Positions 1,758 to 52,465 of a DNA stretch of 64,000 nucleotides are shown one piece after another. The notes under the pieces are model-generated. The model ran no database searches. It was given only the letters and a program-made list of their open reading frames with translations, and was not told the DNA's origin. The translations under genes were made by a program, and so were the position numbers. Position 1 is the first letter of the stretch. Every line of letters begins with the position of its first letter. Source of the stretch: Thalia democratica (lineage: Eukaryota); contig OZ241832.1 in assembly GCA_965202585.1 (NCBI GenBank), positions 31,000,001-31,064,000 of the forward strand, written 5' to 3'.

Positions 1758-3158
1758 ATGAAGAACCGAAAGTTAAGTGAAATAATTACAGCTACAAGGT
1801 TAAACAAACTTTCCCTTAACGAAATTGCAAGTAGTACACTTTCTGCAATCTTAGAAAAAAAGATAAAAATTAAAAATGCTGCTTCTGTTTACAAGTTCGT
1901 GAATCTGTTCAATTTTTCTAGCCTCCAAGATTCAACCCTTAACTATATAGAACGTTGTGTTACAATTGTAAGTGATAATGAAAGCTTTTTAGAACTAGAA
2001 TATAACTTTATTTCTAAAATACTTGCAAGTTCTAAACTTCTAATTACTTCAGAAATTGAAGTATTTGAAATAGCAAATAGATGGTTAAACCACAAAATTG
2101 AAGATCGTAGCAAATACGCTGAAGATCTTTTATTAAAAGTTCGTCTTCAGTTGCTTTCAACAGAAACTATAAGACATCTTTTAAATGATTCAACAATTAC
2201 AAAAGCTGATATTTGTGTAAAAATTTTAAGTGATATGCTAAACTGCAGAGTAAACGGTTCTTATAAATCTTCAAGTGATTATAATACTAGTAGGTATTGT
2301 AGACAAAAATATTTTAAACTTGTGGTATGTGGAGGTCTTAACTCAGTAACACTAATGACTTATCGCTATGTAAGTTGTATTGACTTTAACAAAGTAGGAG
2401 ATGTAGAAGCTTATCCACCAATGAAAACGGGACGTAGTTTACCGAAAGTAGTTTATTTAAAAGGCAATATTTATGTATTTGGTGGTTGGAAAAGAAACAA
2501 GAAATGGACATTGTCTGTAGATAAATATTCACTTAGTTCTAAAAATTGGAGTCAGGTAGCTAAAATGAAAGATGATCGTATATATTTTTGTGTATGTGCA
2601 TTCTTAGATAAAATATTTGTTATTGGAGGTATAAAAGGTGGATTTGAAACTAGTTCTTGTTTACAATTAAATACAAGTGATTATAGTTGGAAAGAACTTT
2701 CTACAATAAGCGAGGCAAGATCAAACGCAGCTTGTGTAGTTTTTGAAGAAAAAATTCTAGTTTCTGGTGGATGTAGTAATTATGGATATGGTTTAAAATC
2801 TGTTGAATCATATGATGTTCTACCAAATAAATGGTCAGCAATGCCAAATATGAACTCCCGTAAATCTGACCACAGTTTAGTTGTTGTTAAAAACAAATTG
2901 TTTGTAATTTCAATGAGAGAAAACAGTTGTGAATTTTTTGACAGCATGTGTAAAAAGTTTATCACAATAAAATCACCAGAATTTGATTTGTTTTCTATCA
3001 TTAGTGCTTATTCTTTTGAAAACAAAATTTTAGCCATTCAAGACGAGCAGAAGAAAATAATTACTTATGATACTAACGAAAATAAATGGTCGGAAGAATC
3101 TTGTGAAGTCAGAAAAAACCTTCAGTGGTTTTCTAGCGTGAAAGTACCTTGTTTATAA
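1758..3158 (+). CDS. Kelch-like protein copy 1 (BACK domain + six Kelch blades, no recognisable BTB), 466 aa from the ATG, intact
   Basis: BACK signature (YIERC..V...SFLEL....I.KIL.SS.L.I.SEIEVF....RW..H....R......LL.KVRL), then Kelch repeats with GG...Y......W motifs. The ATG at 1758 aligns with the start of the four paralogs (tttagGTATG), whereas the ORF-track TTG start at 1710 is not conserved. Confidence 0.9.
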   Translation: MKNRKLSEIITATRLNKLSLNEIASSTLSAILEKKIKIKNAASVYKFVNLFNFSSLQDSTLNYIERCVTIVSDNESFLELEYNFISKILASSKLLITSEIEVFEIANRWLNHKIEDRSKYAEDLLLKVRLQLLSTETIRHLLNDSTITKADICVKILSDMLNCRVNGSYKSSSDYNTSRYCRQKYFKLVVCGGLNSVTLMTYRYVSCIDFNKVGDVEAYPPMKTGRSLPKVVYLKGNIYVFGGWKRNKKWTLSVDKYSLSSKNWSQVAKMKDDRIYFCVCAFLDKIFVIGGIKGGFETSSCLQLNTSDYSWKELSTISEARSNAACVVFEEKILVSGGCSNYGYGLKSVESYDVLPNKWSAMPNMNSRKSDHSLVVVKNKLFVISMRENSCEFFDSMCKKFITIKSPEFDLFSIISAYSFENKILAIQDEQKKIITYDTNENKWSEESCEVRKNLQWFSSVKVPCL

Positions 3159-4294
3159 ATAATATTAACCCAATTATAAGTTTTAAAACTTAAAAAAAGA
3201 TTATAAGTATTGTTTTGATAATTGACAAAAAGACTAGATCACATAGAAAAAAAAACAAGAAAAAAAAAACAAAAAATATTATTCTCTACTATTTGAATAT
3301 ATAGAGAAGTACAATATTTTAATTTTAGGTTCTTTAGAATAATTTAAGTCAACAATTAATGAGCAATTTTTTTTCTTGTTGTATCTTCTTAGGTTTTTAT
3401 TTCAATGCAAAATTTTAAAGTTTAGAAGTTCGCTTTGATTTTTTTTGACTAATAAACAATGTTATTTCTTATTGCTTGTTTTGCTTGTCGATGTTTAAAA
3501 CATAGCTTGAAATAGACATATATTAAAACAAACAAGTTCTTTAACCGCTTATTATGGTTTTTATAGAAAAAATTACAGTTTTCAAATCTATTTATTCTTA
3601 GATCATCTGTGAAGATTACTTTACATAGAATTTTGTCATATTTACACGACGTCACTTGTGCTTCAGTGCAGTTTTTGTATGAGACTTAATTTATCTATGT
3701 GTCACGTTTATGTACATATCAGGGTTTTTGCACAGAGCTTCATTTTAGCACGGCATAACTTTTGTATATTAATAGTTTTAACAAAAGTATTTAAGTGAAG
3801 TAGATACTGGAGTTATCTTTTTATTAGTTTTTGGTAAAAACAAAATGAATTATAAATTTAAACTAGTTTTAAATCAATTAAACATATTTAAATGCGGCAA
3901 AGCTTGTTTAGTAAATTTTGTTCAGTGTAAATGTTTTAATGAAAAAATATATATGTATATATACCTCCTACATATGTAAAAAATAATTTATAATCTACCT
4001 AATCTTATAAAACAATGAAAATAGTTATATACAATAAAAATGAGAGATAAATAATAGAAATTTCAACTTAAACAGCTTGTGAAAATTTGATTCAACTAAG
4101 TACTTTTGTCAACAGTTCAAATCTTATAAATTTATTTTATTTTAAAATATGCGAATTAGTTGCGACTGACCGCTTTAAAAGGTATGATAAAAAAAAATGT
4201 TTTGATATTATGATGAGGGAAATTTTTTCATTTGAGTCACGAACACATGCTTCAGAAAAATATTTAATATTCATTTCTCACGTCATAGTTCAGA

Positions 4295-4475: not shown

Positions 4476-6164
4476 TTAATAAATGATCTTTGAATAAAGC
4501 TTCAAATAAATAAAATTGTGTATTAGCGTGATAACATTTTCTACTTAAATATCAAAACTTCCTAAAAAGAAAACAAATTCAATTAAAAAAAGACCTTAAA
4601 TGTTATATATAATGTTTAGTTTCTTTTTTTTTGTTATTTAAAGTCTTATAGTATAATTTTTTATACTCAAGGAAATTTTTTTATATAAATATAACATAGA
4701 TGTGAACCTGGTATTATCAACAATTTTTAAAAGTTAAGTCATTATTTTAAAGTTTACTTTAAATTTTTTATAAGGTTCATTATATACTACTTAGTAAAGT
4801 CTTTAGATCGATGCTAAAATTTTAGTGACATTTAAAACAAATTTTTTGTTTCATAGTTTTATTTAGAATTATTTTCGGTTTAAATTTAAGCCCTAAATTT
4901 TTAAGTTTGGCTTCTAACTTTTTAGGATTATTTGAGTTCAATTGTCATAGCATAAAATTGTTAAAACTTACATTACTTTTTATTTACTTAACAAACATTT
5001 CAATTATTGTGTAACCAGTACAGACACGTGATACTTTTGTTAAGGGTGCGGAAAATTTACAGATATTTAAAAACCTCTTTGTTTGATATTTTAAAAATAA
5101 CTTGTTAAGATTAAAGTGCTACGAATATTAAAAACTTGTAAGTAAAAGATTAAATAATGTGATAAATGTTTCTGTAAATTAGTTCTGGTTAGCATAATAT
5201 ATTTTTCAAGTTAGTATCTGCTTTATTAAGATCCACCCCAAGAAGCCGATAATTATTAAAATACGGTTAAAAGTATTAACTTTCAGGCAATTTGGCAAGA
5301 TATTTAGTATGTTTGTAATTTGCTTAACAAAATAGTAGTCTGATTTTAACCTATAGATTGTTTTGACTTGGAAACGATGTTTTTGTAGTTCTAAAATCAT
5401 TTATTGTCTAAAGCTTTAATGAGGTGGTTTATGTTTTTATTGTAAGTTATGCGTTTTTAAAACTTATTTGTCACAAAATACTAATATCATCTGTTATACT
5501 TTAAAGTTTTGAAGTAATAATCGGTTTTACAAATAAAAGTATGCTCACAAAAAATATCTACAACTATTTTATCGTATTTAGTCTACTTTTTAATTTTTAT
5601 CAAACTTTTAATTTTTAATTGAAAAATTTATTACATGAAAAAGAAAACACAAGTAAAAGTATTTGATTATATGAATTGTAACTAGTTAAGTTAAAGAGAC
5701 CTTCTATAAAATGAAAAGTAAATATAGATCGCATAAGAACTTAAGTAAATAAACTAATTCTAGTTAAAACTTTATTTTTACTACAATATACTAAATTATT
5801 CTGATGTTCTTGGTTTTTAAACAATAACTTCATTAAATAAGCATAATTGTAGAAAATGAAGATAATTTTATTTTAATTTGTAGTTATTTAAAATACATTA
5901 TAATGCTAATGAATTTACGCATAAACAATAATGAAGAGCAAATTAAATGATGTTGCTGATGATTTAAAATTAAAGCAAGATTGCAAAAAATAAAATAGAA
6001 ATAAACAAGCATTTTTTTACTATTTCTTACATTTTTAGTTTGACCACAATAACAAAGTTTCTGTATACACGGAATATTTTATGAATATTAGATTCTGTAG
6101 ACTGCAGAGACTAGGTTTTAGTCACTGCACTCAATTGCTTTGTCTTTTAAATTCTTTAGTTTGA

Positions 6165-6355
6165 TCAATGATGTCTCGAGTTATGAATCAAAGTATTTCG
6201 TGCTGATGCTTGATTTTCCTGAAAATTTATTTTTGAAGATGCTCCGGTGTTTTTGACTTGATTGATACCAGTATTTCCGACTAATTGATGATTATTTTGC
6301 ATATTTTGTATTTGTTGGTTGTTATAATGTTAAACAGTTTTAGACAGTATATTGC
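6165..6355 (-). pseudogene. 3' remnant of the multi-homeobox gene (internally deleted copy)
   Basis: Translates as ...IITNQQIQNMQNNHQLVGNTGINQVKNTGASSKINFQENQASARNTLIHNSRHH*. This aligns to the C-terminus of 40013-41098 (NERLQRIQNRQLAENSGNNQIQNNQASSRRHSQGNQASAQNNQTQSLGHHG). The 3' flank 5000-6150 is also homologous to about 38.9-40.0 kb and 55.1-55.9 kb. Confidence 0.8.
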
Positions 6356-6519
6356 TTAAGTTTGATGGTAGTTAAAAAGATAGTTTTATCTGGAAAGTTA
6401 AGGACCGCAAATTATTATCGGTCTATATATTTAGTAAGATTCATGACTTCATAAATACATGAATACATAATTTTCTTAATTATTAAGTTAAGGTATCAAA
6501 TCAATTTACAGCTCACTTA

Positions 6520-7400
6520 CTAGGCTTCAAAATAAAGTTATTTAAATTAGCTTCAGGTGTTACAGCTGTAGCAGGGCCTTATTTAAAACAGTTATTAATA
6601 AACTTAAACTTTTTGTTTACAATTTTTTTGTTTTGTATTTTTTTACTAGGTGCAGCTATAGCTCAGATGTTCAACCGCACGCGACGCCCCTGGTTTGAAC
6701 AACTGTTTTTCTGCCTAAAAACAGTTAAACCTAATAATAGACATCAGTGTCGACGAATGATACTTTTCATATAGTGCGAAAACATACGAGCATCAAAAAA
6801 CTGTAATTTCATACTTTGAAACTAACTTTACGAGACAAAAAAAAAATTATTAGAAAGCAAAAGTATATGATTATTTTTACAGTTTTATAATGCTATGATA
6901 AGGTTTTAAACTTTCCTTGGTAGAGCATCTGCTCTAACGTTATACTATAAATTTAGAAAAAAATCATTGTGGTTAGTGTTAAAAAAGGTTCCAATTGTAA
7001 CGTTGAAGTATTAAACTAATATTTGCAAAGTCACCAAATTAAAAACAAATTTTTTTTTTAAAGTTTATAGCCTTATCCCTAACTCATCTAACTCAAACAC
7101 GTTTAAACTAATAATAAAAAAGTTAACAACCAAAAATATAAAATGATGAAATTTTTTTTTCTAATTTTATACACTCAGCAAATATTAAGAGTAAAACTTT
7201 AATGTTTCAACAGACTTTGATAAAAAATCCTTGGAAATTTTATTTATTACTTTAACTAGTTTAAATTCTACTGCGAGGATTTTTTAACACTAAACACAAT
7301 GCTTTTTATCAAGACTGCTCCACACTAGTAGCGCCCCTGGTAAACACTTCAAAGTAAATGTTAACAAACATGTTTTATTTATTTATCTAATATTTTAACA
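6520..7400. repeat. Conserved non-coding block D (copies at about 27040-27930, 37620-38760 partial, 42680-43100 partial, 60800-61617)
   Basis: Shared motifs gcagggcctt, gcacgcgacgcccctggtttgaac, gtcgacgaatg, catacaagcatc, gagc(a/g)tctgctc, tagcgc(c/t/a)(c/a)ctggta. Confidence 0.85.
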
Positions 7401-8534
7401 TAGTTGAGTCAGACATTGACTCATTGGTTTAAGTTATACTGATAAATTTAATTTGTTTAAAAAATAATAGTTACCATGATTTAGGCTAGCCAGAATTTCA
7501 AAATACAAGTGTCCTAAATACTGAACAAACGTTTTAAATTGTCTTCAATGCACGAGTCGACTTTTTCCTTCTAAGCTGGTAACTATTTCCTGTAGTTAAA
7601 CTTAAAACTTTAAAACTAGAAATAAAACTACTTATAAAACTTGTTATTACTTACTATAATCGCTTTACTTTACATACCAGGTCTTAGACCAAATGTTTTA
7701 TCTTTTTTTTTTGTTTTTCAATAACCAATATCACAGAGCAACTTATAAAATACATCAAAAATAATATTTGTTAATAAGAAAACGTTTGAACTTTTTAAAT
7801 AGTTTATTTTTTTGAAGGTGTTTGTCATCTTATAACTTATAATTATTATTCCTAAAATATTTACTTTAATACATTTGTTCCCCTCAAAATACTTCACAAA
7901 ATGTTAATAGCCAAAATTGTCACACCAGTTCTTGGCATTTTTAACAATAAATTTTATCAATCTACTACTTTTAAGAAATATCTTGCCTTTTTATCATATA
8001 TTTAAATAGTTCGTGCAGTAGTAATTTTCTAGTTTGTTAGTTTTTTAATGTTTTTTTGTTAAGTTTAAACTTGGTGTTAATTGGAAAAGCTTTATGTAAA
8101 GTTTCAATTCTAAAATGATGGCTATTAATACATTAGTTGTATTACAAAAATAGTTTTTAGATGTCTAAGATAAACAAGGTTTACTTAAAATAATATGTTT
8201 TCAGACATTTTTATTCTAACTAACCTGATAAATTATAATGACCACATTAAAATATACAATTTTTGTTTTTATACAGTGTAATGCTTAACTATTAGATAAT
8301 TTTTTATTAAAACAATTTTGCTTAACTACAAGTATAAAATTTAATGATTTAATAAAAAGATGATAAGTTTTAAAACACATTATTTGATATATAAGTAGTA
8401 ACAATAAAAAAATATTATGAAACATTTCAAAAAGTCCATTTATGAATTTTATTTTTTTTTTTTCAATTTATATAAGTATCTCAACTTCTATTGATGCTGC
8501 CATTTTTTTTTGTAGGAAGTATAAATCTTATTTA

Positions 8535-8952
8535 TAGTGTTACCACTTTACCTGAAATTCTGGAAATACCTTAAATTTGACAATTAAGGCAAAAAACCTG
8601 TGAATAATTTGGAGTTTTGGAAATTTTGAAAAAAATACCTGGAAAAACCTAAAACTTTGAACAAAAATCACTAAAAAAACTGGAAAAACCTGGAATTTTA
8701 ACAATTTTCAAATGTTTAGTTGTAAAATTTTGAATTGACTTAAAAAATTTATCATATAGTTAAAAAATGTTTGACACTATCAATTTTTTTTTATTAAACA
8801 CGTATTTAAAGTAACTTTACAGTATCTTTTAAATGTTATTATACTATTTAACAGTTTCTTAGCTTAAACTTAACTTTAAACTAAGAATGGACCCAAAAAT
8901 GTGTTCTCTTAAAAGCCTTGAAAAAAACTTTAAAAAACTAGTGGCAACCCTG
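8535..8952. mobile_element. Non-autonomous TIR element (MITE family 1) with 6-bp TSD
   Basis: Left end tagtgttacca (degenerate cagggttgcca), right end tggcaaccctg, flanked by tattta on both sides. Empty site (single tattta) in the paralogous block at about 44190. Confidence 0.85.
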
Positions 8953-9589
8953 TATTTAGTTTGTTGCAAATATTAGCTTAATAGACAATATACTGTTGAT
9001 ACATACTGAAGCTACTTACACTTAATTAAAATTTTTATTTGTTCTGTACTTTGTTAAACATTTTCTAATAGTTTTGTTGTGACTTATAATTTGTTTTACC
9101 CTCTTATTTCTTTAAATATCAATTTTTTTGTAGAACTATATGTTAACTACATTATTAAAGACGAAAAAATGATATAAAAATGTAATTTTAGGCTACTTGG
9201 CATAAGAATAAGGAAATAAATTAATAATGCTAGTTAGCAGTCTAAAATGTTTAAGATAAAATAAAAAATGATTTAGTATTAATTTTAAGTGTTATAATAA
9301 AATCTAATTCAAAATGTTTTATTTACAGTAAAAATTTTTTGAATAATATTTCAAGTTTTCAAAAGATAAAAAGGGAACTTGTTTACTAAGATATACACTC
9401 GAAAAATGTTTATTTTTTCCTTGTTATATATCTTAAGTTTATTTTTTTGTAAGATTTAAATTCAAAAAAAAAATTGTTGTGTTAATACATAATTTTATAT
9501 TTAAAGAATAAAAACTGTTTCTTTATTTTTTTCATAAAATAAGGGATTATATTGATAAAAAATTCCATAAGGTGGGACTAAAATGTAAA

Positions 9590-9740
9590 CAACAAAGGGT
9601 ATTGTCCCAATTTTAATTTTCAAACTAATTATGGAACTGACAAAATATAAGTCCCAAAAGTAACAATATAACTGAAAAAACTTAGTCCACAGTCACAATA
9701 GAACAGACAAAATTTAAGTCCAAAAAACTAACAAAAGTAT
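9590..9740. repeat. Degenerate ~33-bp tandem repeats (aactgacaaaa.ttaagtcc), probably an old TIR-element fragment; copies at about 30170-30290 and 44850-44960
   Basis: Three periods are visible: aactgacaaaatataagtccc / aactgaaaaaacttagtcca / aacagacaaaatttaagtcca. Confidence 0.55.
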
Positions 9741-10011
9741 TGAAAATGTGTGAGTACGACAAAGTTACAAAAAATGGTGACCAATTTTAAGTTACAGTAA
9801 CTCATGTTAAACTTATTTAAGACTCTTGAATATTTATATAACTAAAAAATAGACAATACTTGTAAGAAATTAAGACAGTAAAGACCAGTAAAATGCTGAA
9901 ATTTTTAGAAATTTGTACTATAAGAGTTTTCATAGGCATGATAATTGAATGAGATTTGTGATTGAAAAAATTGTTTCAATCATAATGTTAATGATTTTTG
10001 TCTAGTTATTG

Positions 10012-10467
10012 CAGGGGTGCCACACACTAAGGAAACTCCGGTAATTCAGGGAAACTCAGGGAAGGTTCAAGTTTAAAAAAATCTCAAGGAAAATCAGGGA
10101 ATTATGATTTTTTTTTTTACTCAGAAAAAACTCAGGGAAGTTTTGATTTTTTCTAAAAATTTAAGTTAAATTTTAAAACAATCTCAGGGAAAATTCTTTT
10201 CTAGATCTAGAGTGAGATTTAGTTAATTCAGTTAGTTTCAATATTTTGTTCAAAAAAATTAGTTTCATTTATTTTTGTGTTTATTTAGAAACTTTTATCC
10301 TTTTGTCTAGATCTTCAATATTCTTTAAAAAAACATTGTAATTTTTTAATAAACAGTAAAATTTTTAAGGAGAAAAAACTCAGGGAAACTTAGGTAAGTT
10401 TAGGGTTGATGAGGGTAGTTTTTGGTCACTTAGGGAAGATTTTTTGACTCAAAGAGTGGCAACTCTG
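10012..10467. mobile_element. Non-autonomous TIR element (MITE family 2) with 5-bp TSD
   Basis: caggggtgcca...tggcaactctg with internal (ct)cagggaa repeats, flanked by tattg on both sides. Confidence 0.85.
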
Positions 10468-10828
10468 TATTGACAATTTATGCAAATTAAATTTTCTTAA
10501 ACAGCTTTTGGATAACTTTGAGTACTATTAGTTTTCTAAATGTGAAGGCTTTAAAACCATTTGTTGAATATATTTAATTTCCTATCACTTTGTATTTAAA
10601 TTTTTTCTATTTTATTAGTTTTAAGACTAGTTTAATGTTTTGTATGTTATATAATTTAAAGATTTTTTCTGCTGTAAGTTTAAAAAATTAAGATAAGCTG
10701 CACTGTTTTGCATTAAAAATTACTTTGCCTCACTAATGTCATAGCTAAAAGTAAAAGTAGAGAGAATCTTTGAAAATGGCAGGAAGAGTAAATGTATTGG
10801 AATATCAGTTTTTTTGCTGTATCATTTA

Positions 10829-11214
10829 CGAGGTTGCCATTTACCTTAATTCTACGAAAAACCTGAAATTTGATAATTTAGACAAAAAAAACTTGAAAAC
10901 CCCGGAATTTTGAACAAAAACCACTAAAAAAACCTGGAGTTTTAACAATTTTCACATGCTCAGTGATAAAATTTCGGTTGGACTCAAAAAATCTATTATT
11001 TAAATAAAATTTTTTTGTTACCATCAAAAGTTTTTTTAAATACATTTATAAAATAGCTTTACAGTATCTTTTCAATGTCTTTATACTATTTAACACATTT
11101 TCTTACCTTAAACTTATCTTTAAACTACAAATAGATTTGAAAATGAGTACTTTTAAAATCCATGAAGAAATTTTGAAAACCTGGAAAAATGTTTGAAAAC
11201 GACTGGCAACTCTG
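10829..11214. mobile_element. MITE family 1 element with 6-bp TSD
   Basis: cgaggttgcca...tggcaactctg, internal acctggaaaaa repeats like 8535-8952, flanked by cattta on both sides. Confidence 0.85.
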
Positions 11215-11649
11215 CATTTATTTGAACATCAAAAACTATTAAAAAAGGCAACTAGTAACAAACAGTAATAAACAGTAAATATACTGTTTATTAAACATCT
11301 TTTTTTTAAACAACTCTAACAATTATAATAGATATTTTGATTTTAATTACAAGTAGTTAATTATTAATTTAATATATATTCTTATAGTATATTCCTGTTA
11401 GATTTTATTTTAGTGTAAACATTTTGACCACACTAAAGTATTTTCCAAAGCATAATGTTCTTTGATAATAAGTGTTTGATATTTTGTTTAGAATAAAATA
11501 TAACCACTTTAAGTTATTTCTAGTTTTTATTAATAGTATGGTATACCTTAACAACTATTTCTTATAAATAAAATTTAAATTTAATTATAGTTTAGTGTGG
11601 TTTTACAATACACTATAAGTTTTCAATATATTTTTTATTAGTTTTATTT

Positions 11650-11660
11650 TTTACAGGTTA
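11650..11660 (+). promoter_or_regulatory. Splice (or trans-splice) acceptor about 27-29 nt upstream of the small-ORF ATG
   Basis: Pyrimidine tract + AG|GT conserved in all four copies: ttttacag|gttat (about 11658 and 32203), ttttaaag|gttat (about 17054), ttttccag|gctat (about 46951). Confidence 0.6.
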
Positions 11661-11685
11661 TTTAAACATTTATAAAAGATAAACT

Positions 11686-11868
11686 ATGTCAACACACCAT
11701 AGTCAATTTGAAAATACTACAAAGAAAATAAAACTAGATGGAGTTGATGAAAATGTAAGTAGCATTGCAGAATACAAAAGGCTTGCTATTCTGAAGTATT
11801 GCAAGGAAAATGGGGTTAAAAAAAATCAGTTAGATGTATTATCCATTTCAAAAGAATTTTATAAATAA
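11686..11868 (+). CDS. Conserved small ORF upstream of Kelch (60 aa); either a micro-protein or the first coding exon of the Kelch gene
   Basis: Four paralogs keep the frame and the core VSSIAEYKR.AIL.YC.ENG..K.QL..L.IS, with many synonymous differences. No family recognised. Confidence 0.7.
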   Translation: MSTHHSQFENTTKKIKLDGVDENVSSIAEYKRLAILKYCKENGVKKNQLDVLSISKEFYK

Positions 11869-12772
11869 GGTTTTTTTTGTTTTTATTTATATTGATAATA
11901 ATATTTATCTTTGAATTCTATGAAAGTTTTCTCTACGTTCGTGATATGATAAACTATAGTAGTACTCATTACTAGCTATTTTATGCACAAATCTTTCTTA
12001 TTTTTATTCAATGTGTCTTAGAAAACAAAGGTAACTCATAAACCTTAGTTTAATAAACTTAAATGTTATTTTTATTTTTATTTATGAATTTAACCGTATG
12101 AGGTAAATAGTTAAACTATGATGCTTAAATTTAAAACAACGGCAAGTCATCAATCAATGAAGCTTATATCTTATAAATTAAAGGGCTGTTAATCATAATT
12201 TAATCTAAGGAATAAAACTTTGTTGTTATTTAAAAATGTGATATGGAAATTTTATGTGTTATTGAAACATTCCTAGTCTGCTTTAGAGTAATACGTTCAA
12301 TTGAATTAGTAGTATTTTAATAGTAATTTCGCGCATTGAGTGCTTAATTCTTAAGCCTTCTCCTGAATTCATCTAACTTATTATCACTAAACTTAATTCT
12401 ACTTAATATATGTGAAACTTAAAAAAGTTAGTTTATTTTAATTGACAAAGCAGCTTATCTATTATTAGAACAAAACTGCGAAAATGAATACAAAAAAGTA
12501 ATTCAAATTTTCTGCAAACTAATAAAATCTTATTTAGTGTTTTTATTCAGAATCTTATTAAAAGTTTTATAAACAGAACTTTAACATATATTGTTTAAAT
12601 TTCATAATTTGAATTGAAAACATTCATCTAGCGCCTCAGATGGTAATTTTAAAAACATCAAAATGTATATAGCTTGTTACAATAAAATAAAAATATTTTT
12701 TTTAGAATCAGTTTGTTTTTTCTGTTTAGAGCGTTTGATTTGTTATGTAACCAATAACAAAACTATTTAGGT

Positions 12773-14179
12773 ATGAAGAACCGAAAAATGACTGAAATAA
12801 TAACAGCTACAAGATTTAACAAACTTTCCCTAAACGAAAATGCAGTTAGTACAATTTCTGCAGTCTTAGAAGAAAAATTACAAATCAAAAATGCTGCTTC
12901 TGTTTACCAGTTTGTTAATCTGTTCAATTTATCTAGGCTCAAAAATTCAACCCTTAGATATATAGAACGTTGTTTTACAATTGTAAGTGATAATGAAAGC
13001 TTTTCAGAACTAGAATATAAGTTTATTTCTAAAATACTTGCAAGTTCTGAACTTCTAATTACTTCAGAAATTGAAGTACTTAAGGTAGTTGTAAGATGGC
13101 TAAACCACGACATTGAAAAACGTAGCAAGTACGCTGAAAATCTTTTATTGAAAGTTCGTCTTCATTTGCTTTCAAATGAAACTTTAAAACATCTTTTGAA
13201 TAGTTCAACATATTTAAAAAAAGGTGATTGTTTTGTAAAAACTTTAAATGAAATGCTAGACTGCAGAGAAAAAAAAATATTTGAAACTCCGAGTATTTAT
13301 CATGCAAGTAGGTATTGTAACCAAAAGTGTTTTAGATTAATGGTTTTAGGGGGCTATAATTTAGAAACAGCAATAAATTGTCGCAATGTAAGTTGTTTTG
13401 ATGTTGATAAGGTAGAAGTTGTAGAAGCTTATCCATCAATGATAACGGAACGCACTTTTCTAAAAGTAGTTTATTTAAAAGGTGAAATTTATGTATTTGG
13501 TGGTTATAATAAAAATAGTGATTGGATAAAGTCTGTAGATAAATATTCACTTACTTCTAAAACATGGAGTCAGGTAGCTGATATGAATGATTATCGTAAA
13601 TTTTTTTGTGTATGTGCATTCATAGATAAAATATATATGTTTGGAGGTAAAAAAGATGGAGCCAGAACTAATTCTTCTTTACAATTTGATGCAAGTGATA
13701 GCGGTTGTTGGAAAGAAGTTGCTACAATGAATGGGTCAAGATCATGTGCAGCTTGTGCAATTTTTGAAGAAAGAATTGTAGTTTCCGGTGGATTTAGTGA
13801 TAATGGAAATTTTTTAAACTCTGTTGAATCATACGATGTTCTACCAAATAAATGGTCAACAATGCCAAATATGAACTCCAGTAAATATGACCACAGTTTA
13901 GCTGTTGTTAAGAACAAGTTGTTTGTAATTTCAAAGAGAGAAGACAACAGTGAAGTTTTTGACAACATTTGTAAAAAGTTTATCACTATTAAATCACCAG
14001 GGTTTGACACGTTTTCTGATATAGGAGCTTATTCTATTCAAAAGAAAATTTTTGCCTTTCGAGACAAATCTTCAAAATTAATTTTTTATGATACTAACGA
14101 AAGTGAATGGTTGGAAGAATCTTGTGAAATAACAAAAAACCTTCGACGGTTTTCTAGCGTGAAAATACCTTGTTTATAA
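12773..14179 (+). CDS. Kelch-like protein copy 2 (BACK + six Kelch blades), 468 aa, intact
   Basis: Uninterrupted ORF with the same domain signatures as copy 1. Confidence 0.92.
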   Translation: MKNRKMTEIITATRFNKLSLNENAVSTISAVLEEKLQIKNAASVYQFVNLFNLSRLKNSTLRYIERCFTIVSDNESFSELEYKFISKILASSELLITSEIEVLKVVVRWLNHDIEKRSKYAENLLLKVRLHLLSNETLKHLLNSSTYLKKGDCFVKTLNEMLDCREKKIFETPSIYHASRYCNQKCFRLMVLGGYNLETAINCRNVSCFDVDKVEVVEAYPSMITERTFLKVVYLKGEIYVFGGYNKNSDWIKSVDKYSLTSKTWSQVADMNDYRKFFCVCAFIDKIYMFGGKKDGARTNSSLQFDASDSGCWKEVATMNGSRSCAACAIFEERIVVSGGFSDNGNFLNSVESYDVLPNKWSTMPNMNSSKYDHSLAVVKNKLFVISKREDNSEVFDNICKKFITIKSPGFDTFSDIGAYSIQKKIFAFRDKSSKLIFYDTNESEWLEESCEITKNLRRFSSVKIPCL

Positions 14180-17083
14180 AGAATATTTAGCATATTAGAA
14201 AATCTAAGATTTAAAATTTTAAACGATATTGTTTTGATAATTAACAAACTAACCACTTTGCATATAAATAAACATATATTTATTTTAAATTTTACTCTTT
14301 AATTATACATAACATATTGTATATTTTGACACTTTTATTATAGTTCTTGTAAAGGTTGATTAGTTTCAGTCGGTAGTTTTTTATCACACTTTTTCTAATT
14401 ATCATTCCTGCGTTTTTTTTAGCGTGAAGTTTTAATAGTTTAAAATTTAGATTAGATTTTTGCTCACTTATAAAAAATTTTACTACTTGCTGTTTTTTTT
14501 TCATTATGTCGTGTAATTCAGAGATTAAAAATAGACAAATATACATATAGACAAAAAAGTTCTTTTATTTTGGTAGTTTTTATAAAAGATGTTACAGTTT
14601 TTAAATAAAATTAATCTTAAATATAAAGGAAAATATTACATTCGCTTATAGAAAATTGTCATTTTTGCACGTCTTAATTTATGCACAAGTGCCTTTTTGT
14701 ATACGACGTAATTTGTTCATGAGTGGCAAATCTGCACATTTTAAAATTTTTACATAGATTTTTGCACGGCATAAATTTTGTTGAACTAAAAAAAACTAGC
14801 AAAAGTATTTAAATAAAATAAATTTAGTAAAGGTTTTGTTATCTGAATAAAATTTAGTAAAACTAATAAAAAAACTAAACTAAATCTAACTAAGAAAAAT
14901 AATGGAGAATTACAATAAACTTGAAAGAAATTAAGCAGTACAGAGCTTTTATAAAACTTATTAAAAATCCTATGATAATTATTTTAAAGTTAAAATCTGA
15001 CAGAAATTCAGTTCAAAGACAAAATCAAAATAAAAAAACGATGTTTACACATTAGTAAAGCAGTAATTTATTGAATATTTGAATGGTCTTTAGAGACCTT
15101 CTTTTTTTTAACACTAGTATGAACATTTACAATGTGTTATTAAACTTCATGAAACGCCTTTTAACAAAGACATGTGTAATTTTTATAAGTTTCAAAGTAA
15201 ACTATATTAACAGAGGTGTTTAAACAATCATGAGTGAATTTTAAAGAAAATGTAAATTTAAAAATTTATAAAACCCAATATAAAATATATGTAAATGTTT
15301 TGTACTTAATTTTTATACTTAAACTTCGGTTTTAATTGAGTAATTATATTAATCCTAGTGCTCACTTTACTGACAAAATATAAACTGTTTGTTTCGATTT
15401 TATTCTAGAGGATTAAACGCAGTTTGTTTAAAACATACCTACTAAATGTAATATTAATTTTAAAAAATTAATTACAAAATAAACACTTAGAATTAAATTT
15501 TTACATTAAGTAATTACCGTAAAAATTCGACTTTCAGTTGTCAGATTTGAAATTAGCAAATGGGCTAATATTGCTTAAGCATAGAATTAAGTTGAATATT
15601 TAAAAGTTTCTTTACTATTCAGATTTCTTAGTTTCTAAATTTCGGCAATCCTATTCAATCTGCGTAGATAAACTAAGAATTGGAAGGATAAGACCTCGAG
15701 TTAACCAACGGGGGCCGAGTTTTTACTAGTATCCTTCAGCAGCCATAAAAGAAAAAGGAATAAAAATAATCCTAAATAGTTCACGAAATGCTGTTTAAAT
15801 TGAATTTTTACATATGTTAATAGGTTTGACTGTTAATTTTTAGCCAAATTTTAAACAATGTATGTTGACTATTTAAGATTAAAGATTAAAATAGTTACAG
15901 AATTTTCTTGTGTATAACTAGCTGTCAGCTTAAAAAGGTTCAAAATCAAATTGTGACATCATAATGAATTCAAGCTTTGAAAGGGCTTATTTTCAAAGGA
16001 TATTTTATACTAAGTTACAAAATTTTTCAGGTTAAAGTAATTTAATTAAAATTATTTTCTTCTTATTTTAATTTAAACATTGCTAGAAAGCATGAGTTAT
16101 AAATAAAATAATTGAAGACGTTATAATTAATTATTAATAGTAAATGTATGTCTTAACAAGACACTAATAAAATAGTTTTTTAAGTAGTCTAGATAAAAGA
16201 TACAAGCATTTTGTTGTAAGAAGTTTTTAAACTGCTATGAAAACTAGTGGTGCTATAAAAATTAAAAACTATGCTGTAGAAAAAAAAAAGCATAGAAAAA
16301 AATTTGCAAATTCAGTTTTTAGTAGTCATTCCTTATCAAGTGCTAGTAATTCTTCATTCAAAAACATACTTTATATTAGAAATTAAAAAGTATAATGAAA
16401 TTTCACTGATGTATTTTGATTTGCTTTAAACGTTATAGTGTTTAGAGTTATTTGAGAGAAGCAAAGTATTAAAAAAAAATACATGCCGTTATACTTAATA
16501 TTATGCTAGTAATACTGAGTATTGTAAGACATTAGAATTAAAAGAGAACCTAAACTCTGAAGGTACAACTAAATTTTTCTCATAATAGTTTGTTACACAA
16601 TTTTAATAAGTTATCAAAGTTTATTACCCATTTCGAAGCGTTCTGTTTAAATTTTTAAATGTTAAACAGACTACTGTAAATATAAAATCATATATCAATA
16701 TAGCAGTCTAAACTGTTTAAAATACAACAATAAAATGGAATTTTACTAACAAAAGTTATTAAAGTACAAACTTATAAAAAACAGATGTAGTTACAATAAG
16801 ACTTAAAGATTAAAAATTTAAGTTTGAAAAGATGAAAAAGAAGCTTATTATAAAGTTGATTATGTACATTCAATAAATGAATTAAACTTAAAAAATATTA
16901 TGCTATATAAAAATTGAAAACAAAAGTGAAAAAGTGAAAAATTAAAGTAAATGATACTTATAGTTTTAAAGAACAAGTACGGTATTTAACTAGCTGTATC
17001 TTCTAAAAAGTTTCTTTATCAAAGTACAATTTTTGTGAGTTTGTAATTTTAAAGGTTATATAAATCTTTATAAGAGATAAAGT

Positions 17084-17224
17084 ATGTCAACACAACAACA
17101 TGTAAGCAGTATTGCAGAATACAAAAGATGTGCTATTTTGAATTACTGCAAGGAAAATGGTATTAAAAAACATCAGCTACATGAATTGACGATTTCAAAT
17201 ATCCATAATAATTTAAGTATGTAA
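17084..17224 (+). CDS. Small-ORF paralog, 46 aa (not in the ORF track)
   Basis: My translation: MSTQQHVSSIAEYKRCAILNYCKENGIKKHQLHELTISNIHNNLSM*. It has an in-frame 51-nt (17-codon) deletion relative to the 60-aa copies and ends at a donor-like a|gtatgt (GT at 17217). Confidence 0.7.
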   Translation: MSTQQHVSSIAEYKRCAILNYCKENGIKKHQLHELTISNIHNNLSM

Positions 17225-32232: not shown

Positions 32233-32415
32233 ATGTCAACACAACATAGTCAATTTGAAAATACTACAAAGAAAATAAAACTAGATCGAGTTGATGAAAA
32301 TGTAAGTAGCATTGCAGAATACAAAAGGCTTGCTATTCTGAAGTATTGCAAGGAAAATGGGGTTAAAAAAAATCAGTTAGATGTATTATCCATTTCAAAA
32401 GAATTTTATAAATAA
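32233..32415 (+). CDS. Small-ORF paralog, 60 aa (near-identical to 11686-11868)
   Basis: Two amino-acid differences from the 11686 copy (H4Q, G19R). Confidence 0.65.
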   Translation: MSTQHSQFENTTKKIKLDRVDENVSSIAEYKRLAILKYCKENGVKKNQLDVLSISKEFYK

Positions 32416-33317
32416 GGTTTTTTTTGTTTTTATTTATATTGATAATAATATTTATCTTTGAATTCTATGAAAGTTTTCTCTACGTTCGTGATATGATAAA
32501 CTATAGTAGTACTCATTACTAGCTATTTTATGCACAAATCTTTCTTATTTTTATTCAATGTGTCTTAGAAAACAAAGGTAACTCATAAACCTTAGTTTAA
32601 TAAACTTAAATGTTATTTTTATTTTTATTTATGAATTTAACCGTATGAGGTAAATAGTTAAACTATGATGCTTAAATTTAAAACAACGGCAAGTCATCAA
32701 TCAATGAAGCTTATATCTTATAAATTAAAGGGCTGTTAATCATAATTTAATCTAAGGAATAAAACTTTGTTGTTATTTAAAAATGTCATATGGAAATTTT
32801 ATGTGTTATTGAAACATTCCTAGTCTGCTTTAGAGTAATACGTTCAATTGAATTAGTAGTATTTCAATAGTAATTTCGCGCATTGAGTGCTTAATTCTTA
32901 AGCCTTCTCCTGAATTCATCTAACTTATTATCACTAAACTTAATTCTACTTAATATATGTGATATTTATAAAAGTTAGTTTATTTTAATTGACAAAGCAG
33001 CTTATCTATCAGTAGAACAAAACTGCGAAAATGAATACAAAAAAGTAATCCAAATTTTCTACAAGCTGACAAAATCTTATTTAGTGTTTTTATTTAGAAT
33101 CTTATTGAGTGTTATAAACAAAACCTTAAAATATATTGTTTAAATTTTATAATTTGAATGGAAAACATTCATCTAGTGCCTCAGGCTATAATTTTAAAAA
33201 CAACAAAATGTATATAGCTTGTTACAATAAAATAAAAATATTATTCTAGAATCAGTTTTTTTTTTTCTGTTTATAGCGTTTGATTTGTTATGTAACCACT
33301 AACAAAACTATTTAGGT

Positions 33318-34741: not shown

Positions 34742-37700
34742 AAAACCGAAGAGTTAAAATTTTAAACAATATTTTTTGATAATTAAAAAACTAACCACTT
34801 TACATAGAAATAAACATACATTTATTTTAAATTTTACTCTTTAATTATACATAACACATTGTATACTTTGACACTTTTATTATAGTTTTTGTAAAGGTTG
34901 ATTAGTTTCAGTCGAAAAGAATTTAGCACACTTTTTCTAATTATCATTCCTGCGTTTTTTTTTTAGTGTGAAGTTTCAATAGTTTTAAATTTTGATTTTT
35001 GCTCACTTATAAAGAATTTTACTACTTTCTGTTTTTTTTTTTAATGTCGTTTAATTCAGAGATTAAAAATAGACAAATATACATATAGACAAAAAAGTTC
35101 TCGTTTTTATGTATTTTAGTAGTTTTTATAAAAGGTGTTACAGTTTTTAAACAAAATTATTCTTAAATATTAAGAAAAATAGTACAGACGCTTAGAGAAA
35201 ATTGTCATTTTTGCACGTCTTAATTTATGCACAAGTGCCTTTTTGTATACGACCTAATTTATTCATGAGTGGCATATCTGCACATTTAAAAATTTACATA
35301 GATTTTTGCACGGCATAACTTTTGTTGAAACAAAACAAAAAAACTAGCAAAAAAATTTATATAAAATAAATTTAGTAAAGGTTTTGTTATCTGAATAAAA
35401 GTTAGTAAAACTAATAAAAAACGTAACTAAATCTAACTAAGAAAATATAATGAAGAATTACAATAAACTTGAAAAGAAATAAGCTGTACAGAGCTTTTAT
35501 AAAGCTTATTAGAAATTCTATGACAATTATTTTAAAGTTAAAATCTGACAGAAATTCAGTTCAAAGACAAATAAAAAATAAAAAACCATGTTTACACACT
35601 AGTAAAGCAGTAATTTTTTGAATATTCGAATGGTCTTTAGAGACCTTCTTTTTTTTCATTACTAGTAAGAACATTTACAATGTGTTATTAAGCTTCATGA
35701 AACGTCTTTTTACAATAATATGTGTAATTCTTAAAAATTTCAAAGTAAACTTTATCAACAGAGGTTTTTAAACAATCATTAGTGAATTTTAAAGAAAATG
35801 TAAATTTAAAAATTTATTAAACCAAATAAAAATATATGTAAATATTCTGTACATAATTTTTATACTTAAACTTCGGTTTTAAATGAGTAATTATACTAAT
35901 CTAGTGCTCACTTTACTGACAAAATATAAAGTGTTTGTTTCGATTTTATTCTAGAGGATTAAACGCAGTTTGTTGAAAACAAACCTACTAAATGCTAATT
36001 TTAATTCTAAAGAATGTATATTAAAATAAACACTTAGAATTAAATTTTTGCAATAAGTAATTACCGTAAAAATTAATTTTGAGTTGTCAGATTTAAAACT
36101 AACAAATAGCGTAACATTGCTTAAGCATAGAATTAAGTTGAATATTTAAAAATTTCTATACTATTCAGATTTCTTAGTTTCTAAATTTCGGCAATCCTAT
36201 CCAATCTGTGTAGATAAATTAAGAATTGGAAGCATAAGACCTCCAGTTAACCAACGGGGACGCGTTTTTACTGATATCCTTTTTCTGCGCAGTCCATAAA
36301 AGATAAAGAAAATAATCCTATACAGTTCACTAAATGCTGTTTAAATTGAATTTTTACATATGTTAATAGGTTTGATTGTTGCTTTTTTGCAAAATTTTAA
36401 ACAATGTATGTTGAATATTAAGGTTTAAAGATAAAAAAGTTACAAAATTTTCTTGTGCATAACTAGCTGTCAGCTTAAAAAGGTTCAAAATCAAATATTG
36501 ACATCATAATGATTTCAAACTTTGAAAGGTCTTCATTTCAAAATGATATTTTATATTAAGTTTCAAAAATTTCAGATAAAAGTAATTGAATTAAAATCAA
36601 TTTCTTCTTATATTAGTTCAAACATTGATAGAAAATATGAGCTAGTAAATAAAATAAGTGAAGATGTTATAATTGATTATCAACATTAATTTATATATCA
36701 TAACGAGAAACTGATAAAAAAGATTTTTAAGTAGTCTAGATAAAAGATACAAGCTTTTTGTTGTAAGAAGTTTTTGAACTGTTTGAAAACTAGTAGTGCT
36801 ATAGAAATTAAAAACTATGCTATAGAAAAAAAAGCATAGAAAAAAATCTGCAAATTCAGTTTTTAGTAGTCATTCCTTATCAAGTGCTAGTAATTCTTCA
36901 TTCAAAAACATACTTTATATTAGAAATTAAAATGTATAATGAAATTTCATTGATGTAGTTTGATTTGCTTTAAACGTTTTGGTGTTTAGAGTTATTTTAG
37001 AGAAGCAAAGTATTAAAAAAAACAATACTGCCGTAGTAGTTAATTTTATGCTAGTAATACTTAGTATTGTAAGAAATTAGAATTAAAAGAGAACCTAAAC
37101 TCTGAAGGTAATTTTTTTTTCGTAATAGTTTGTTACACGATAATAAGTTATCGAAGTTTATTACCCATTTCGAAGCGTTCTGTTTAAATTTTTAAATGAT
37201 AAACAGACTACAGTAAATATAAAATCAAAGATCATATAGTTTATAAATTAAAAAAAACATTTTAAATCTAATACAAATATAGTGAAACCCACTTCTCATA
37301 TTTAATTTGTAAATTCATAAAAACATGGCACAAAAATCTTAAATATAAAACAAATATATACATTATTTATTGGAGGACAAAACAAGCGTTTAAAATATTT
37401 GGATCCAGGAGCTTGTACACGTAGAACGTTTCGGTTATCGAGTTGTACAATATCATACTTTTTTAAAAAACAAAATTAACTCTGAAACGAATCATAACAA
37501 AGCTGTTCAAGCTCAGTTGTTACAATTTTAATTGAAAAATTAATGTGTTCCGGAAGTATCTGTTTATATAAAATAAGTATGAGACAAAAAGTATTGAAAA
37601 ATATACTTTGAAAGCTTGTCGAAAAAAATCCACCCGTCGCACGCGACGCCCCGGTTTGAACAACTGATTTTATGATTTTCTGCCTAAAAACATTTAAACC

Positions 37701-40012: not shown

Positions 40013-41540
40013 TTAAATTCCTGGGTTTGATCCGTGATGTCCTAAACTCTGAGTCTGATTATTTTGTGCTGATGCTTGGTTTCCCTGAGAATGTCTTCTT
40101 GAAGATGCTTGGTTGTTTTGAATTTGATTGTTACCACTATTTTCAGCAAGTTGTCTGTTTTGTATTCTTTGCAAACGTTCATTACTAAAGTGCACTGCGA
40201 TTTTATAGAGAAAACCGTTAATGTTCGGCGTAGGCCTTATCTGGTTCAAAAAGTTGCAGTAGTTTACATGGTTTTGGTAGTGGTAGTCATAAATATCAGC
40301 AAAGCGATTTGTTCGATGAATGTTGTAAACATTTAAAGGAACGTTAGGCGTACTGTTTATTATAGGTTGGTTTTGATAAAGCTGATTTGATGCACTGCTT
40401 ACATCTTGTTGATTAACTCGATTTGTTGTATTACTAACTGCCGAAGTAAAAGGCTCACTATTCGCTGTTGACAAACGTCGAGCGCTTTGAAGTTTTTTTA
40501 AAAGTCTTTGATATTTAATATCTGGCTCATCCAAATCCTTTATGTTATAAAACCAAATTTCAACTTTTAACTCGTCAATACCAATTTCTCTCGCTATCTC
40601 TTTCATTTTTTCAACTGACAACTCTTTGACATTGCAGTGCTTTTCAAAGGACTCTTCTAATGTTCGCTTTTCATTTTCACTGTACTCAACCATCCGAAAA
40701 AACGAGCTTTGTATTTTAAGACGTTTTCTTCTGCTTTGAAAGTATCGAAAGACTGCCAGTTTTTCCGCTTTTAGTATCTGGCTCATAGTAGCATATTCTG
40801 GTAATGACGGTTTTGGGTTCAAACTAAAGTACACTTTCGCCAATGGAATTTGATTTCTCTCGAAAATTCTTTTCCTCAAGTCCATTCTATTCATTTTACT
40901 GAACCATTTCGACACAAAATCTCTACTTTTCCCAGTCATTTCAGACAAAAAGTTAATATCAGTTTCTTTCGGGTGCATATTGTCAAGAAAAAATCTGGCG
41001 AGCAGTTTTTCGCAACGTTCGTCGTCACTCAAAGAAGTTTCTCGACTGCTTTTATTAAGCGTGCTTGTCAATGAGACGTCTGGTGATTCTTGAGTCAAAT
41101 CAATTACATTGGATCCTACTAAAGAAAAAGTTTGAGGTTTTTTTTAATTTTTTTAATTAATGGTATGACTTGAGGTATTTTGTCTGCAATTTTGCTAGTA
41201 GATGGTATGTCTTGAGGTTTTTGTTTGTAAATTTACTAGTGGATGGTATGTCTTGAGGCCTTTCGTATGCAAATTTACTAGTGGATAGTTTGTCTTGAGG
41301 CCTTTCATCTGCAAATTTACTAGTTGATGGTATGTCTTGAGGTCTTTCATTTGCAAATTTACTAGTTGATGGTATGTCTTGAGGACTTTCGTATGCAAAT
41401 TTACTAGCATATGTTATGTCATGAGGTCTTTCGTTTGAAAATTTGCTAGTTGAAGGTATGTCTGCAGACTTACATTTATAAATATTTTCCGAAAAAAAAC
41501 TTGAAGAAGATTCACAGCTACCTTTTAAAATTTTATACAT
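40013..41540 (-). CDS. Divergent triple-homeodomain protein with N-terminal 14-aa tandem repeats and a SIM; about 510 aa if two 1-bp homopolymer deletions are corrected, otherwise a young pseudogene
   Basis: Three homeodomain folds in ORF 40013-41098: L..FF.DNMHP......L...TG.....V.KWF (F20/P26/W48 spacing), L...YF..NP.P...........V..YFQSRRKR, and YSENEKRTLEESF...........IAREIG.....VEIWFYN. ORF 41157-41540 joins it in the paralog at 55931-57343, where both parts are in one frame. Confidence 0.8.
41161..41466 (-). repeat. Coding minisatellite, 42-bp / 14-aa unit (ERPQDIPSTSKFAx), about 7.5 copies
   Basis: Repeated forward-strand unit aaatttactagt(t/g)gatggtatgtcttgagg(t/c)ctttc; translated repeats are visible in the ORF track. 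Confidence 0.95.
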
Positions 41541-48220: not shown

Positions 48221-48222
48221 AT

Positions 48223-51061: not shown

Positions 51062-52465
51062 ATGCAGAACCGAATATTAAGTATGAACGTTACAGCTACA
51101 AGATTAAACAAACTTTCCCTCAATGAAAATGCAAGTAGTACAACTTGTACAATTTTAAAAGAAAAATTACAGTGTAAAAATGCTGCTTCTGTTTACCAGT
51201 TTGTGAATCTGTTCAATCTATCTAGCCTCAAAAATTCAACCTTTAGCTATATACAACGTTGTTTTACAATTGTTAGTGATAAAAAAGGCTTTTTAGATAT
51301 AGATTATAATTTTATTTCTAAAATACTTGCAAGTTCTCAACTTCTAATTACTTCAGAAATTGAAGTACTTAAGGTAGTTGTAAGATGGCTAAACCACAAC
51401 ATTGAAGAACGTAGCAAGTACGCTGAAGATCTTTTATTAAAAGTTCGTCTTCATTTGCTTTCAACAGAAACTATAAGACATCTTTTAAATGATTCAAAAT
51501 TATTTGAAGAAGATGATGGTTGTTTTAAAATATTAAAGAAAATTCTAGATTGCAAAAAAATAAAAAATCATAAACCTTCAAGTATTTATCTCACAAGTAG
51601 GTATTGCAAGCAAAAATATTTTAAAATACTGGTTTTAGGGGGTTATGATTTAAAAACAAAAATGATTTGTAGCAACGTAAGTAGTTTTAATGTTAAAAAA
51701 GTAGATGTAGAGACTTATCCACCAATGAAAACGGAACGTGATCATTCAAAAGTAGTTTATTTAAAAGGTGATGTTTTTGTTATTGGTGGTCGGAATAATA
51801 GTGGTTGGATAAAGTCTGTTGATAAATATTCACTTACTTCTAAAGCATGGAGTCAGGTAGCTGAAATGAATGATGTTCTTAAATATTTTTGTGTTTGTGC
51901 ATTTATGGACAAAATATTTATTATTGGAGGTAACAAACATAGAGTAGAAACCAATTCTTGTTTACAATTTGATACAAGTGATTGCAGTTGGAAAGAATTT
52001 GCTAGAATGAACGAAGCAAGATCAAGTGCAGCTTGTGCAGTTTTTGAAGAAAGAATCGTAGTTTGCGGTGGATACAATGGCAACCATAGAAACTTCTCAA
52101 ATTCTGTTGAATCATATGATGTTCTTCCAAATAAATGGTCAACAATGCCAAATATGAACTCTGGTAAATTTAGACACAGTTTAGTTGTTGTTAAAAACAA
52201 ATTATTTGTAATTTCACAGACAAAAGACGGTTGTGAAGTTTTTGACAACACTTGTAAAAAGTTTATCACTATAAAACCACCAGAATTTTACTACTCGTTT
52301 AATTGTATAAAATCTTTTTCTATTGAAAACAAAATTTTTATCTTACCAGAAAACTATTTGAAAATTATTTCTTTCGATCCTAACGAAATTGAATGGTCGG
52401 AAGAATCTTGTGAAGTAACAAGTAAACTTGTATATTTTTCTAGCGTGAAAATACCTTGTTTGTAA
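51062..52465 (+). CDS. Kelch-like protein copy 5 (BACK + six Kelch blades), 467 aa, intact
   Basis: Uninterrupted ORF with the same domain signatures. It can be joined in frame to the 46981 ORF through 47165 GT...AG 51059. Confidence 0.92.
   Translation: MQNRILSMNVTATRLNKLSLNENASSTTCTILKEKLQCKNAASVYQFVNLFNLSSLKNSTFSYIQRCFTIVSDKKGFLDIDYNFISKILASSQLLITSEIEVLKVVVRWLNHNIEERSKYAEDLLLKVRLHLLSTETIRHLLNDSKLFEEDDGCFKILKKILDCKKIKNHKPSSIYLTSRYCKQKYFKILVLGGYDLKTKMICSNVSSFNVKKVDVETYPPMKTERDHSKVVYLKGDVFVIGGRNNSGWIKSVDKYSLTSKAWSQVAEMNDVLKYFCVCAFMDKIFIIGGNKHRVETNSCLQFDTSDCSWKEFARMNEARSSAACAVFEERIVVCGGYNGNHRNFSNSVESYDVLPNKWSTMPNMNSGKFRHSLVVVKNKLFVISQTKDGCEVFDNTCKKFITIKPPEFYYSFNCIKSFSIENKIFILPENYLKIISFDPNEIEWSEESCEVTSKLVYFSSVKIPCL

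Follow-up and report, generated by a model that had tools for sequence, protein, structure and literature searches.

Gene copies in the window and in the assembly

The stretch of DNA analysed in this work, referred to below as the window, comprises 64,000 nucleotides of the Thalia democratica genome (C8:31,000,001-31,064,000 of the 802-Mb assembly; 25% G+C, no N) and contains several copies of a gene that encodes a BACK domain followed by a Kelch propeller. The copies belong to a large array, which is a lineage-specific tandem birth-and-death family of BTB-truncated BACK+Kelch genes. Analysis of their codons suggests that a small set of positions in the predicted ligand pocket of the propeller is very probably under diversifying selection. 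Positions given without the prefix C8 are those of the window.

A tblastn search of the window with the longest copy as query identified five homologous BACK+Kelch units, all on the + strand. Three of them have an intact frame: c1 (1758-3158, 466 amino acids (aa) counted from the ATG), c2 (12773-14179, 468 aa), which serves as the reference for residue numbering, and c5 (51062-52465, 467 aa). In the intact copies the BACK+Kelch frame is continuous and forms a single coding exon. The other two are pseudogenes: c3 (about 18052-19412) shows an insertion of 13 nt near 18042, a stop codon in frame (TGA) at 18784 and the loss of one nucleotide near 18918, and c4 (33318-34741; 93% nucleotide identity to c2) contains two stop codons, TAA at 33660 and TAG at 33873, and lacks one nucleotide at 34199. 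Pfam recognized BACK (E about 1e-20) and Kelch repeats in all five copies; in c2 the BACK domain (PF07707, E=5.6e-21) extends over residues 43-142 (12899-13198, + strand). An earlier note on this DNA had listed loop and scaffold strings of the copies. Those taken from open frames were all found in the translations, and the strings NRGGVTT and KKDGGET, which span breaks in c3 and c4, lie outside that comparison.

A six-frame search of the whole assembly yielded 91 close relatives that were scored, 63 without and 28 with internal stops, and about 57 of the stop-free copies are near full length. In round numbers, the genome holds about 90 close members, roughly a third of them broken. At least 62 copies are located at C8:30.48-32.09 Mb (1.6 Mb), which is the main array; there is a second array at C8:57.5-58.0 Mb, and a few copies lie elsewhere. 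A query taken from the second array recovered the same set of copies. On C8 the copies are mostly in - orientation at 30.48-30.91 Mb, + at 30.97-31.36, - at 31.39-31.50, + at 31.54-31.60 and - at 31.63-31.70. Because the orientation flips in such large blocks, large inverted duplications are suggested.

Copy c2 is part of a 12-kb segmental duplication (4798-16703, + strand), whose partner (25348-37239, about 92% identity) carries c4. Within it, a 3-kb tract upstream of c2 (9269-12263) is 98-99.7% identical to the segment upstream of c4 (29800-32800), whereas the remainder of the duplication is 86-95% identical. This high-identity tract, which ends about 500 bp short of the Kelch frame, is probably the trace of a recent gene conversion event.

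A word search found 288 homologues; all 120 that were listed are ENA metagenome proteins with BACK and Kelch domains and without BTB. Homologues from other species are at most 74% identical to any fetched paralog and, in a joint tree, interleave with the sub-clades of the T. democratica family, so the family must be older than this species and has been kept across species. The joint tree shows species-specific recent bursts on top of shared sub-clades. Literature searches returned no description of the family.

Fold of the proteins and distribution of differences

The AlphaFold2 model of c2, for which a 50-sequence alignment was used as input, has a pLDDT of 87.6 and a pTM of 0.88. In it the BACK region is helical and is followed by a propeller of six blades and 24 strands (residues 185-468; 13325-14176, + strand), the propeller having pLDDT values above 85. 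Foldseek matched the model to the propellers of KLHL17/12/2/3 and Keap1 (TM 0.84-0.87, E about 1e-24). Strands A-D and the loops AB, BC, CD and DA were assigned for each blade from DSSP of the model. According to this assignment the loops that the earlier note had termed post-GG are BC loops, and its linker between blades 1 and 2 is a DA loop. Since successive loops alternate faces in a four-stranded antiparallel blade, the BC and DA loops share one face of the propeller. In KLHL propellers these loops make up the substrate face (PMC3597819).

When the three intact copies of the window (c1, c2 and c5) were compared, identity was 73-75% in the strands, 68-70% in BACK and 63-74% in the AB and CD loops, and fell to 55-57% in the DA loops and to 30-48% in the BC loops. 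BC and DA loops, which contain 40% of the residues of the Kelch domain, account for 56% of its differences. The proposal that the copies diverge mainly in the loops thus stands as an enrichment in BC and DA and was overstated beyond that; strands that differ at a quarter of their residues between intact copies are not a nearly invariant scaffold, as had been claimed. The same distribution was seen among 36 paralogs of the main array, where mean column entropy was 1.28 in BC, 1.17 in DA, 0.83 in AB and 0.75 in CD loops, 0.73 in BACK and 0.64 in the strands. Loop divergence is family-wide, and the window is not special in this respect.

Antisense open frames of 121-139 aa lie above blades 3-5 in c2 (13591-14010, - strand), c4 (34165-34530, - strand) and c5 (51853-52269, - strand). 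Such frames are unusual at 25% G+C and probably follow from the codon pattern of the sense strand.

Selection on the codons of the propeller

A codon alignment of 44 intact paralogs was used to estimate omega, the ratio of nonsynonymous to synonymous substitution rates (dN/dS), and a Kelch-only tree was used for the site models and class tests of the Kelch region. The strands gave an omega of 0.40 (p=7e-36 against neutrality), and the AB and CD loops, which lie on the opposite face from BC and DA, gave 0.62. Strands and AB/CD face are under purifying selection, therefore the proteins fold and have been used. These values bear on the view that the array is decaying and that its copies are gene wreckage without current function. 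Stops or frameshifts occur in two of the five window copies and in 28 of the 91 scored genome copies, and sister pairs have an omega of 0.68 overall, all of which would fit decay. Taking into account, however, that the strand value is significantly low across the tree and is 0.56 even between sister pairs, that 63 of the 91 copies lack an internal stop and most of these are near full length, and that the sub-clades are common to other species, we consider decay very improbable.

Site models identified a class of codons with omega above 1 in the Kelch region. The log-likelihood was -12652.11 for M1a and -12584.70 for M2a (twice the difference, 2dlnL, 134.8), and M2a placed 10.8% of the codons in a class at omega 2.5. 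M7, M8a and M8 gave -12655.30, -12628.91 and -12576.31 (2dlnL=158 for M8/M7 and 105 for M8/M8a), and M8 assigned 13.7% of the propeller codons to omega 2.09. Seventeen sites had a posterior of at least 0.95: 228, 229, 245, 249, 272, 293, 297, 298, 341, 345, 347, 373, 388, 392, 413, 416 and 459. All of them are in BC or DA loops, where they make up 17 of 115 residues; none fell among the 35 residues of the AB and CD loops (Fisher p=0.008) or among the other 169 of the propeller (Fisher p=1e-7).

Altogether about 15-40 codons change their amino acid faster than the synonymous rate, with an omega of about 2. Among them are the codons for the residue that follows the GG doublet in each of blades 2-4, for residues 5-7 in those loops, and for residues just past the conserved Arg of the DA loops. 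In c2 the loops concerned (all on the + strand) include the DA loop between blades 1 and 2 (residues 221-230, 13433-13462; omega>1 sites 228 and 229) and the BC loops of blade 2 (residues 245-253, 13505-13531; sites 245 and 249), blade 3 (residues 293-301, 13649-13675; sites 293, 297 and 298) and blade 4 (residues 341-350, 13793-13822; sites 341, 345 and 347). The omega>1 sites have broad residue spectra rich in W, R, Y and F; at site 341, for example, W was found nine times, R seven times, I, Y and V four times each, T, C and S three times each, besides others.

To relate these sites to a known pocket, c2 was aligned by profile to the Kelch domain of Keap1 (the chain offset of 324 places its F at 478). 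In this alignment residue 245 corresponds to F478, 293 to Y525, 298 to Q530, 341 to Y572, 347 to F577, 228 and 229 to I461 and G462, and 373 to G603; as in any alignment of repeats, the blade register is arbitrary, but the position within the blade is not. F478, Y525, Y572 and F577 are Nrf2-pocket residues of Keap1 (PMC6891428).

Controls of the selection signal

Artefacts arising from recombination, composition bias or multi-nucleotide changes should be visible in the neutral class of BACK as well, thus the BACK half of the same genes, analysed on its own tree, could serve as a negative control. With 51% of its sites at omega=1 and an M0 omega of 0.55, BACK showed no omega>1 signal (2dlnL=0.36 for M2a/M1a). 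The Kelch signal was retained (2dlnL=47.4, omega 2.56) when only the 182 codons more than three columns away from any gap were kept, and it was present in each of three disjoint clades. Sites picked in one clade set and scored in the other had a beta of 1.75-2.3 when the gene-wide synonymous rate was taken as the reference (p about 1e-13), and per-site omega was correlated between clade sets (Spearman 0.72 within loops). Sister pairs, which need no tree, gave omega values of 1.55-1.99 against gene-wide dS (p about 1e-4). The NG86 method, applied to sister pairs by loop class, gave ratios near 1 for the loops of both faces; the counts are small and uninformative alone.

Several observations weigh against selection on the ligand face. 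The M0 omega of the 44 paralogs, 0.58, indicates weak overall constraint, and neither loop class exceeds 1 (BC 1.00, DA 0.80); the expectation, set out beforehand, that dN/dS of the loops would be above 1 was thus borne out only by the 15-40 fast codons. When the synonymous rate was fitted on the selected codons only, it rose to 1.15-1.5, and the cross-validated omega dropped to about 1.5 (p=0.06 and 0.19); with local dS, sister pairs gave a non-significant 1.28-1.45. Allowing site-wise dS in a mixture model lowered 2dlnL from 160 to 36. The first such alpha/beta mixture had no prior and produced unreliable per-site posteriors (e.g. alpha=0.02, beta=0.8), and its site calls were not used. A set of 20 positions chosen a priori by the Keap1 rule had an omega of 1.35, which is not significant (p=0.16). 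The tree of BACK is in well-supported conflict with that of Kelch, and in 13 of 928 pairs the two paralogs have identical tracts of significant length in common; judged from these sequences, gene conversion is taking place among the paralogs, and recombination can inflate site-model tests. All likelihoods were obtained with our own MG94xHKY85 code, not with PAML or HyPhy, all branch lengths being scaled from a nucleotide tree made with IQ-TREE. Finally, the idea that the variable sites occupy one face of the propeller agrees with the location of all 17 top sites in BC and DA loops, the face itself being derived from strand topology and not from measured 3D coordinates. Tests of the kind that the earlier note had called for have a divided outcome: the site models give a class at omega about 2.1-2.5 that is confined to BC and DA loops, and significance becomes borderline when the synonymous rate is fitted at the selected codons only.

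These points are also what would be expected from neutral birth and death, or genomic drift, as has been proposed for F-box families (PMC3030570). In this scenario the fold is constrained and the loops are not, there is no adaptive repertoire, and the codons with omega>1 reflect an artefact produced by gene conversion, by local variation of the synonymous rate or by multi-step changes at hypervariable codons. Loop-class values close to neutrality, the borderline result with local dS, the documented gene conversion, the third of copies that are broken and the neutral half of the BACK sites all speak for it. It does not easily explain, however, why BACK, which shares the recombination regime, the composition and a large neutral class, is devoid of the signal, why the Kelch signal persists after gap filtering, why the same sites are the fastest in disjoint clades, or why these sites are at canonical Keap1 pocket positions. 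Moreover, the synonymous rate of the BC and DA loops taken as a class is not raised (alpha=1.00). For this reason we regard the alpha fitted locally to a few dozen hypervariable codons as a noisy estimate and not as the sign of a mutational hot spot, which is a judgement and not a result. Overall, drift appears rather unlikely, although it is the most serious of the alternatives.

Diversifying selection on a small set of pocket positions, very probable from the codon analysis, leads to the reading that we think is best supported, namely a diversifying recognition repertoire; we hold this to be moderately more probable than its opposite. The single-coding-exon BACK+Kelch genes have been amplified in tandem and are subject to birth and death, the propeller strands and the AB/CD face are kept by purifying selection, and most BC and DA residues evolve about neutrally. 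According to this reading, a subset of ligand-face codons would diversify and thereby change the binding pocket, from which we infer propellers of differing specificity. About 17 pocket positions are now defined for testing. In addition, the opposite behaviour of the BACK and Kelch halves in the same tests provides a system with an internal control for studying selection in gene-converting tandem arrays.

The truncated BTB domain

The earlier note had treated the proteins as ubiquitin adaptors, a premise that fails at the level of domains. Pfam detected no BTB domain (PF00651) at E<=0.01 in any copy of the window. In alignments, residue 24 of c2 falls on residue 174 of full-length Keap1 (chain 6wcq_C) and residue 30 on KBTBD2 122 and KLHL11 133, and the phmmer matches to KBTBD2, KLHL11, KLHL3, Keap1 and gigaxonin begin at c2 residues 24-32. 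Residues 1-42 align to the C-terminal helices of BTB and the 3-box, with BACK following next. It follows from these alignments that the frame starts in the last third of BTB and continues into 3-box and BACK. For the main contact with Cul3, both the BTB domain and the 3-box are required (PMC3597819). As only the last BTB helices are kept, dimerization and Cullin-3 binding of the canonical KLHL type should not be assumed. The groove for the N-terminal extension of Cul3 is lined by BTB alpha5/alpha6, the 3-box and BACK alpha9/alpha10 (PMC3597819); speculatively, the family proteins may keep this groove.

The sequence immediately upstream of the frame contains a conserved 3' splice acceptor, tttag/GT (the stroke marks the splice point), directly before codon 1 (12766-12775 in c2, and at the same place in the other fetched copies). 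Codon 1 is ATG in about 60% of the main-array copies, whereas many copies without other defects encode K, I, L or N there, and none of the eight fetched copies of the second array has an ATG at this position. Because the acceptor is conserved and many intact copies lack M, some form of splicing to the point before codon 1 is likely, and the start of the protein may differ between copies. A small conserved open reading frame (ORF) is located at 11686-11865, about 0.9 kb upstream of the Kelch frame, and was also found at 17081-17221 and upstream of c4. It has no Pfam match at E<=10. In c2 it includes a consensus GTAAGT at 11753 and, as read by eye, a TAA before any in-phase donor.

These features raise the possibility that the proteins are canonical Cul3 adaptors after all, whose missing two thirds of BTB come from small, unrecognized upstream exons joined at the conserved acceptor. 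The acceptor itself, the non-M residues at position 1 and the beginning of the frame in mid-BTB would be accounted for in this way. On the other hand, a search of 49 open stretches of the + strand, each 30 aa or longer, over the 7.5 kb that precede c2 (5200-12772) revealed no BTB-like piece; exons shorter than 30 aa would escape this search, which included no joined exon model. The conserved small upstream ORF resembles no Pfam domain and in c2 stops before an in-phase donor, and PF00651 was found in 0 of the 120 listed homologues, which are single-frame gene calls. We therefore think it quite unlikely that the family encodes complete BTB proteins.

Comparison with known adaptor families

Vertebrate KLHL/KBTBD proteins, Cul3 substrate adaptors such as Keap1, KLHL12, KLHL2/3 and KBTBD2, are similar to the family in two respects. 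Both have a BACK domain with 3-box (the family aligns to KBTBD2 122-230 and KLHL11 133-242) and a six-bladed Kelch propeller (TM 0.84-0.87) with variable BC and DA loops on the substrate face (PMC3597819). The N-terminal BTB/POZ domain that completes the KLHL architecture is absent: just the last ~30 BTB residues are encoded here, which leaves the proteins without the main interfaces for Cul3 and for dimerization. In contrast to the single-copy, conserved KLHL genes, there are about 90 tandem paralogs with an uninterrupted BACK+Kelch frame.

In nematodes (MATH-BTB and F-box) and in grasses (MATH-BTB), adaptor families have expanded in a lineage-specific manner and their substrate-binding domain is under positive selection, as Thomas reportedly described in 2006, a study cited in PMC8120010. 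The array resembles them in its large tandem expansion, its many pseudogenes and a conserved fold, and also in a selection signal at the predicted ligand-binding surface, strong under standard site models and borderline with local dS; it shows, moreover, the lineage-specific expansion with birth and death that characterizes diversifying adaptor repertoires. It differs in that the recognition fold is Kelch instead of MATH or FTH. A further difference is in the cullin-binding module, which in the MATH-BTB and F-box repertoires is conserved under purifying selection and here is truncated, with a BACK remnant that is half neutral (51% of sites at omega=1) and not strongly conserved. Plant KFB families also use a Kelch propeller as the diversified recognition module of an expanded family (PMC13262408, PMC3719486); unlike the BACK proteins studied here, which have no F-box, KFBs join SCF/Cul1 through an F-box. 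BTB-Kelch genes of poxviruses and giant viruses are, like the array, multi-copy and intron-free, and a Nucleocytoviricota cluster was among the language-model neighbours (score 0.90), which is a lead only. However, the viral proteins carry BTB, and the array sits among host repeats and genes; nothing indicates a viral origin.

Rapidly diversifying recognition families indicate where a genome is engaged in conflict or follows ligands that change. Within the ubiquitin system the known cases are mostly F-box or MATH-BTB families of plants and nematodes, to which the array adds a Kelch-propeller example in an AT-rich animal. Its truncated-BTB architecture is unusual and raises the question of Cullin-3 use. 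One could imagine that a BTB-less repertoire of about 90 genes, kept across species, provides germline-encoded diversified recognition without canonical Cul3 recruitment, the proteins acting as decoys or sensors against parasite or viral factors or in self/non-self recognition, with recurrent selection on the pocket and with gene conversion among paralogs and pseudogenes supplying loop combinations. We rate such a role as improbable. Host-pathogen conflict, to which the earlier note had pointed, is as a reading of this array pure conjecture.

Other features of the window

A homeodomain ORF of 361 aa is located at 40013-41098 (- strand; PF00046, E=6.5e-15, in two stretches). Its split paralog at 56195-56989 (- strand) is 16 kb away, and the pair may belong to a duplicated unit. 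The homeodomain ORF is immediately preceded, on its own strand, by a 127-aa ORF (41157-41540, - strand) composed of repeats of a unit similar to PSTSKFA-ERPQDI.

Between c1 and c2, summed contig depth in two DNA runs rises from about 300-700 to 16,000-275,000 at 10104-10471 and 10840-11207. These two segments look like fragments of very high-copy repeats.

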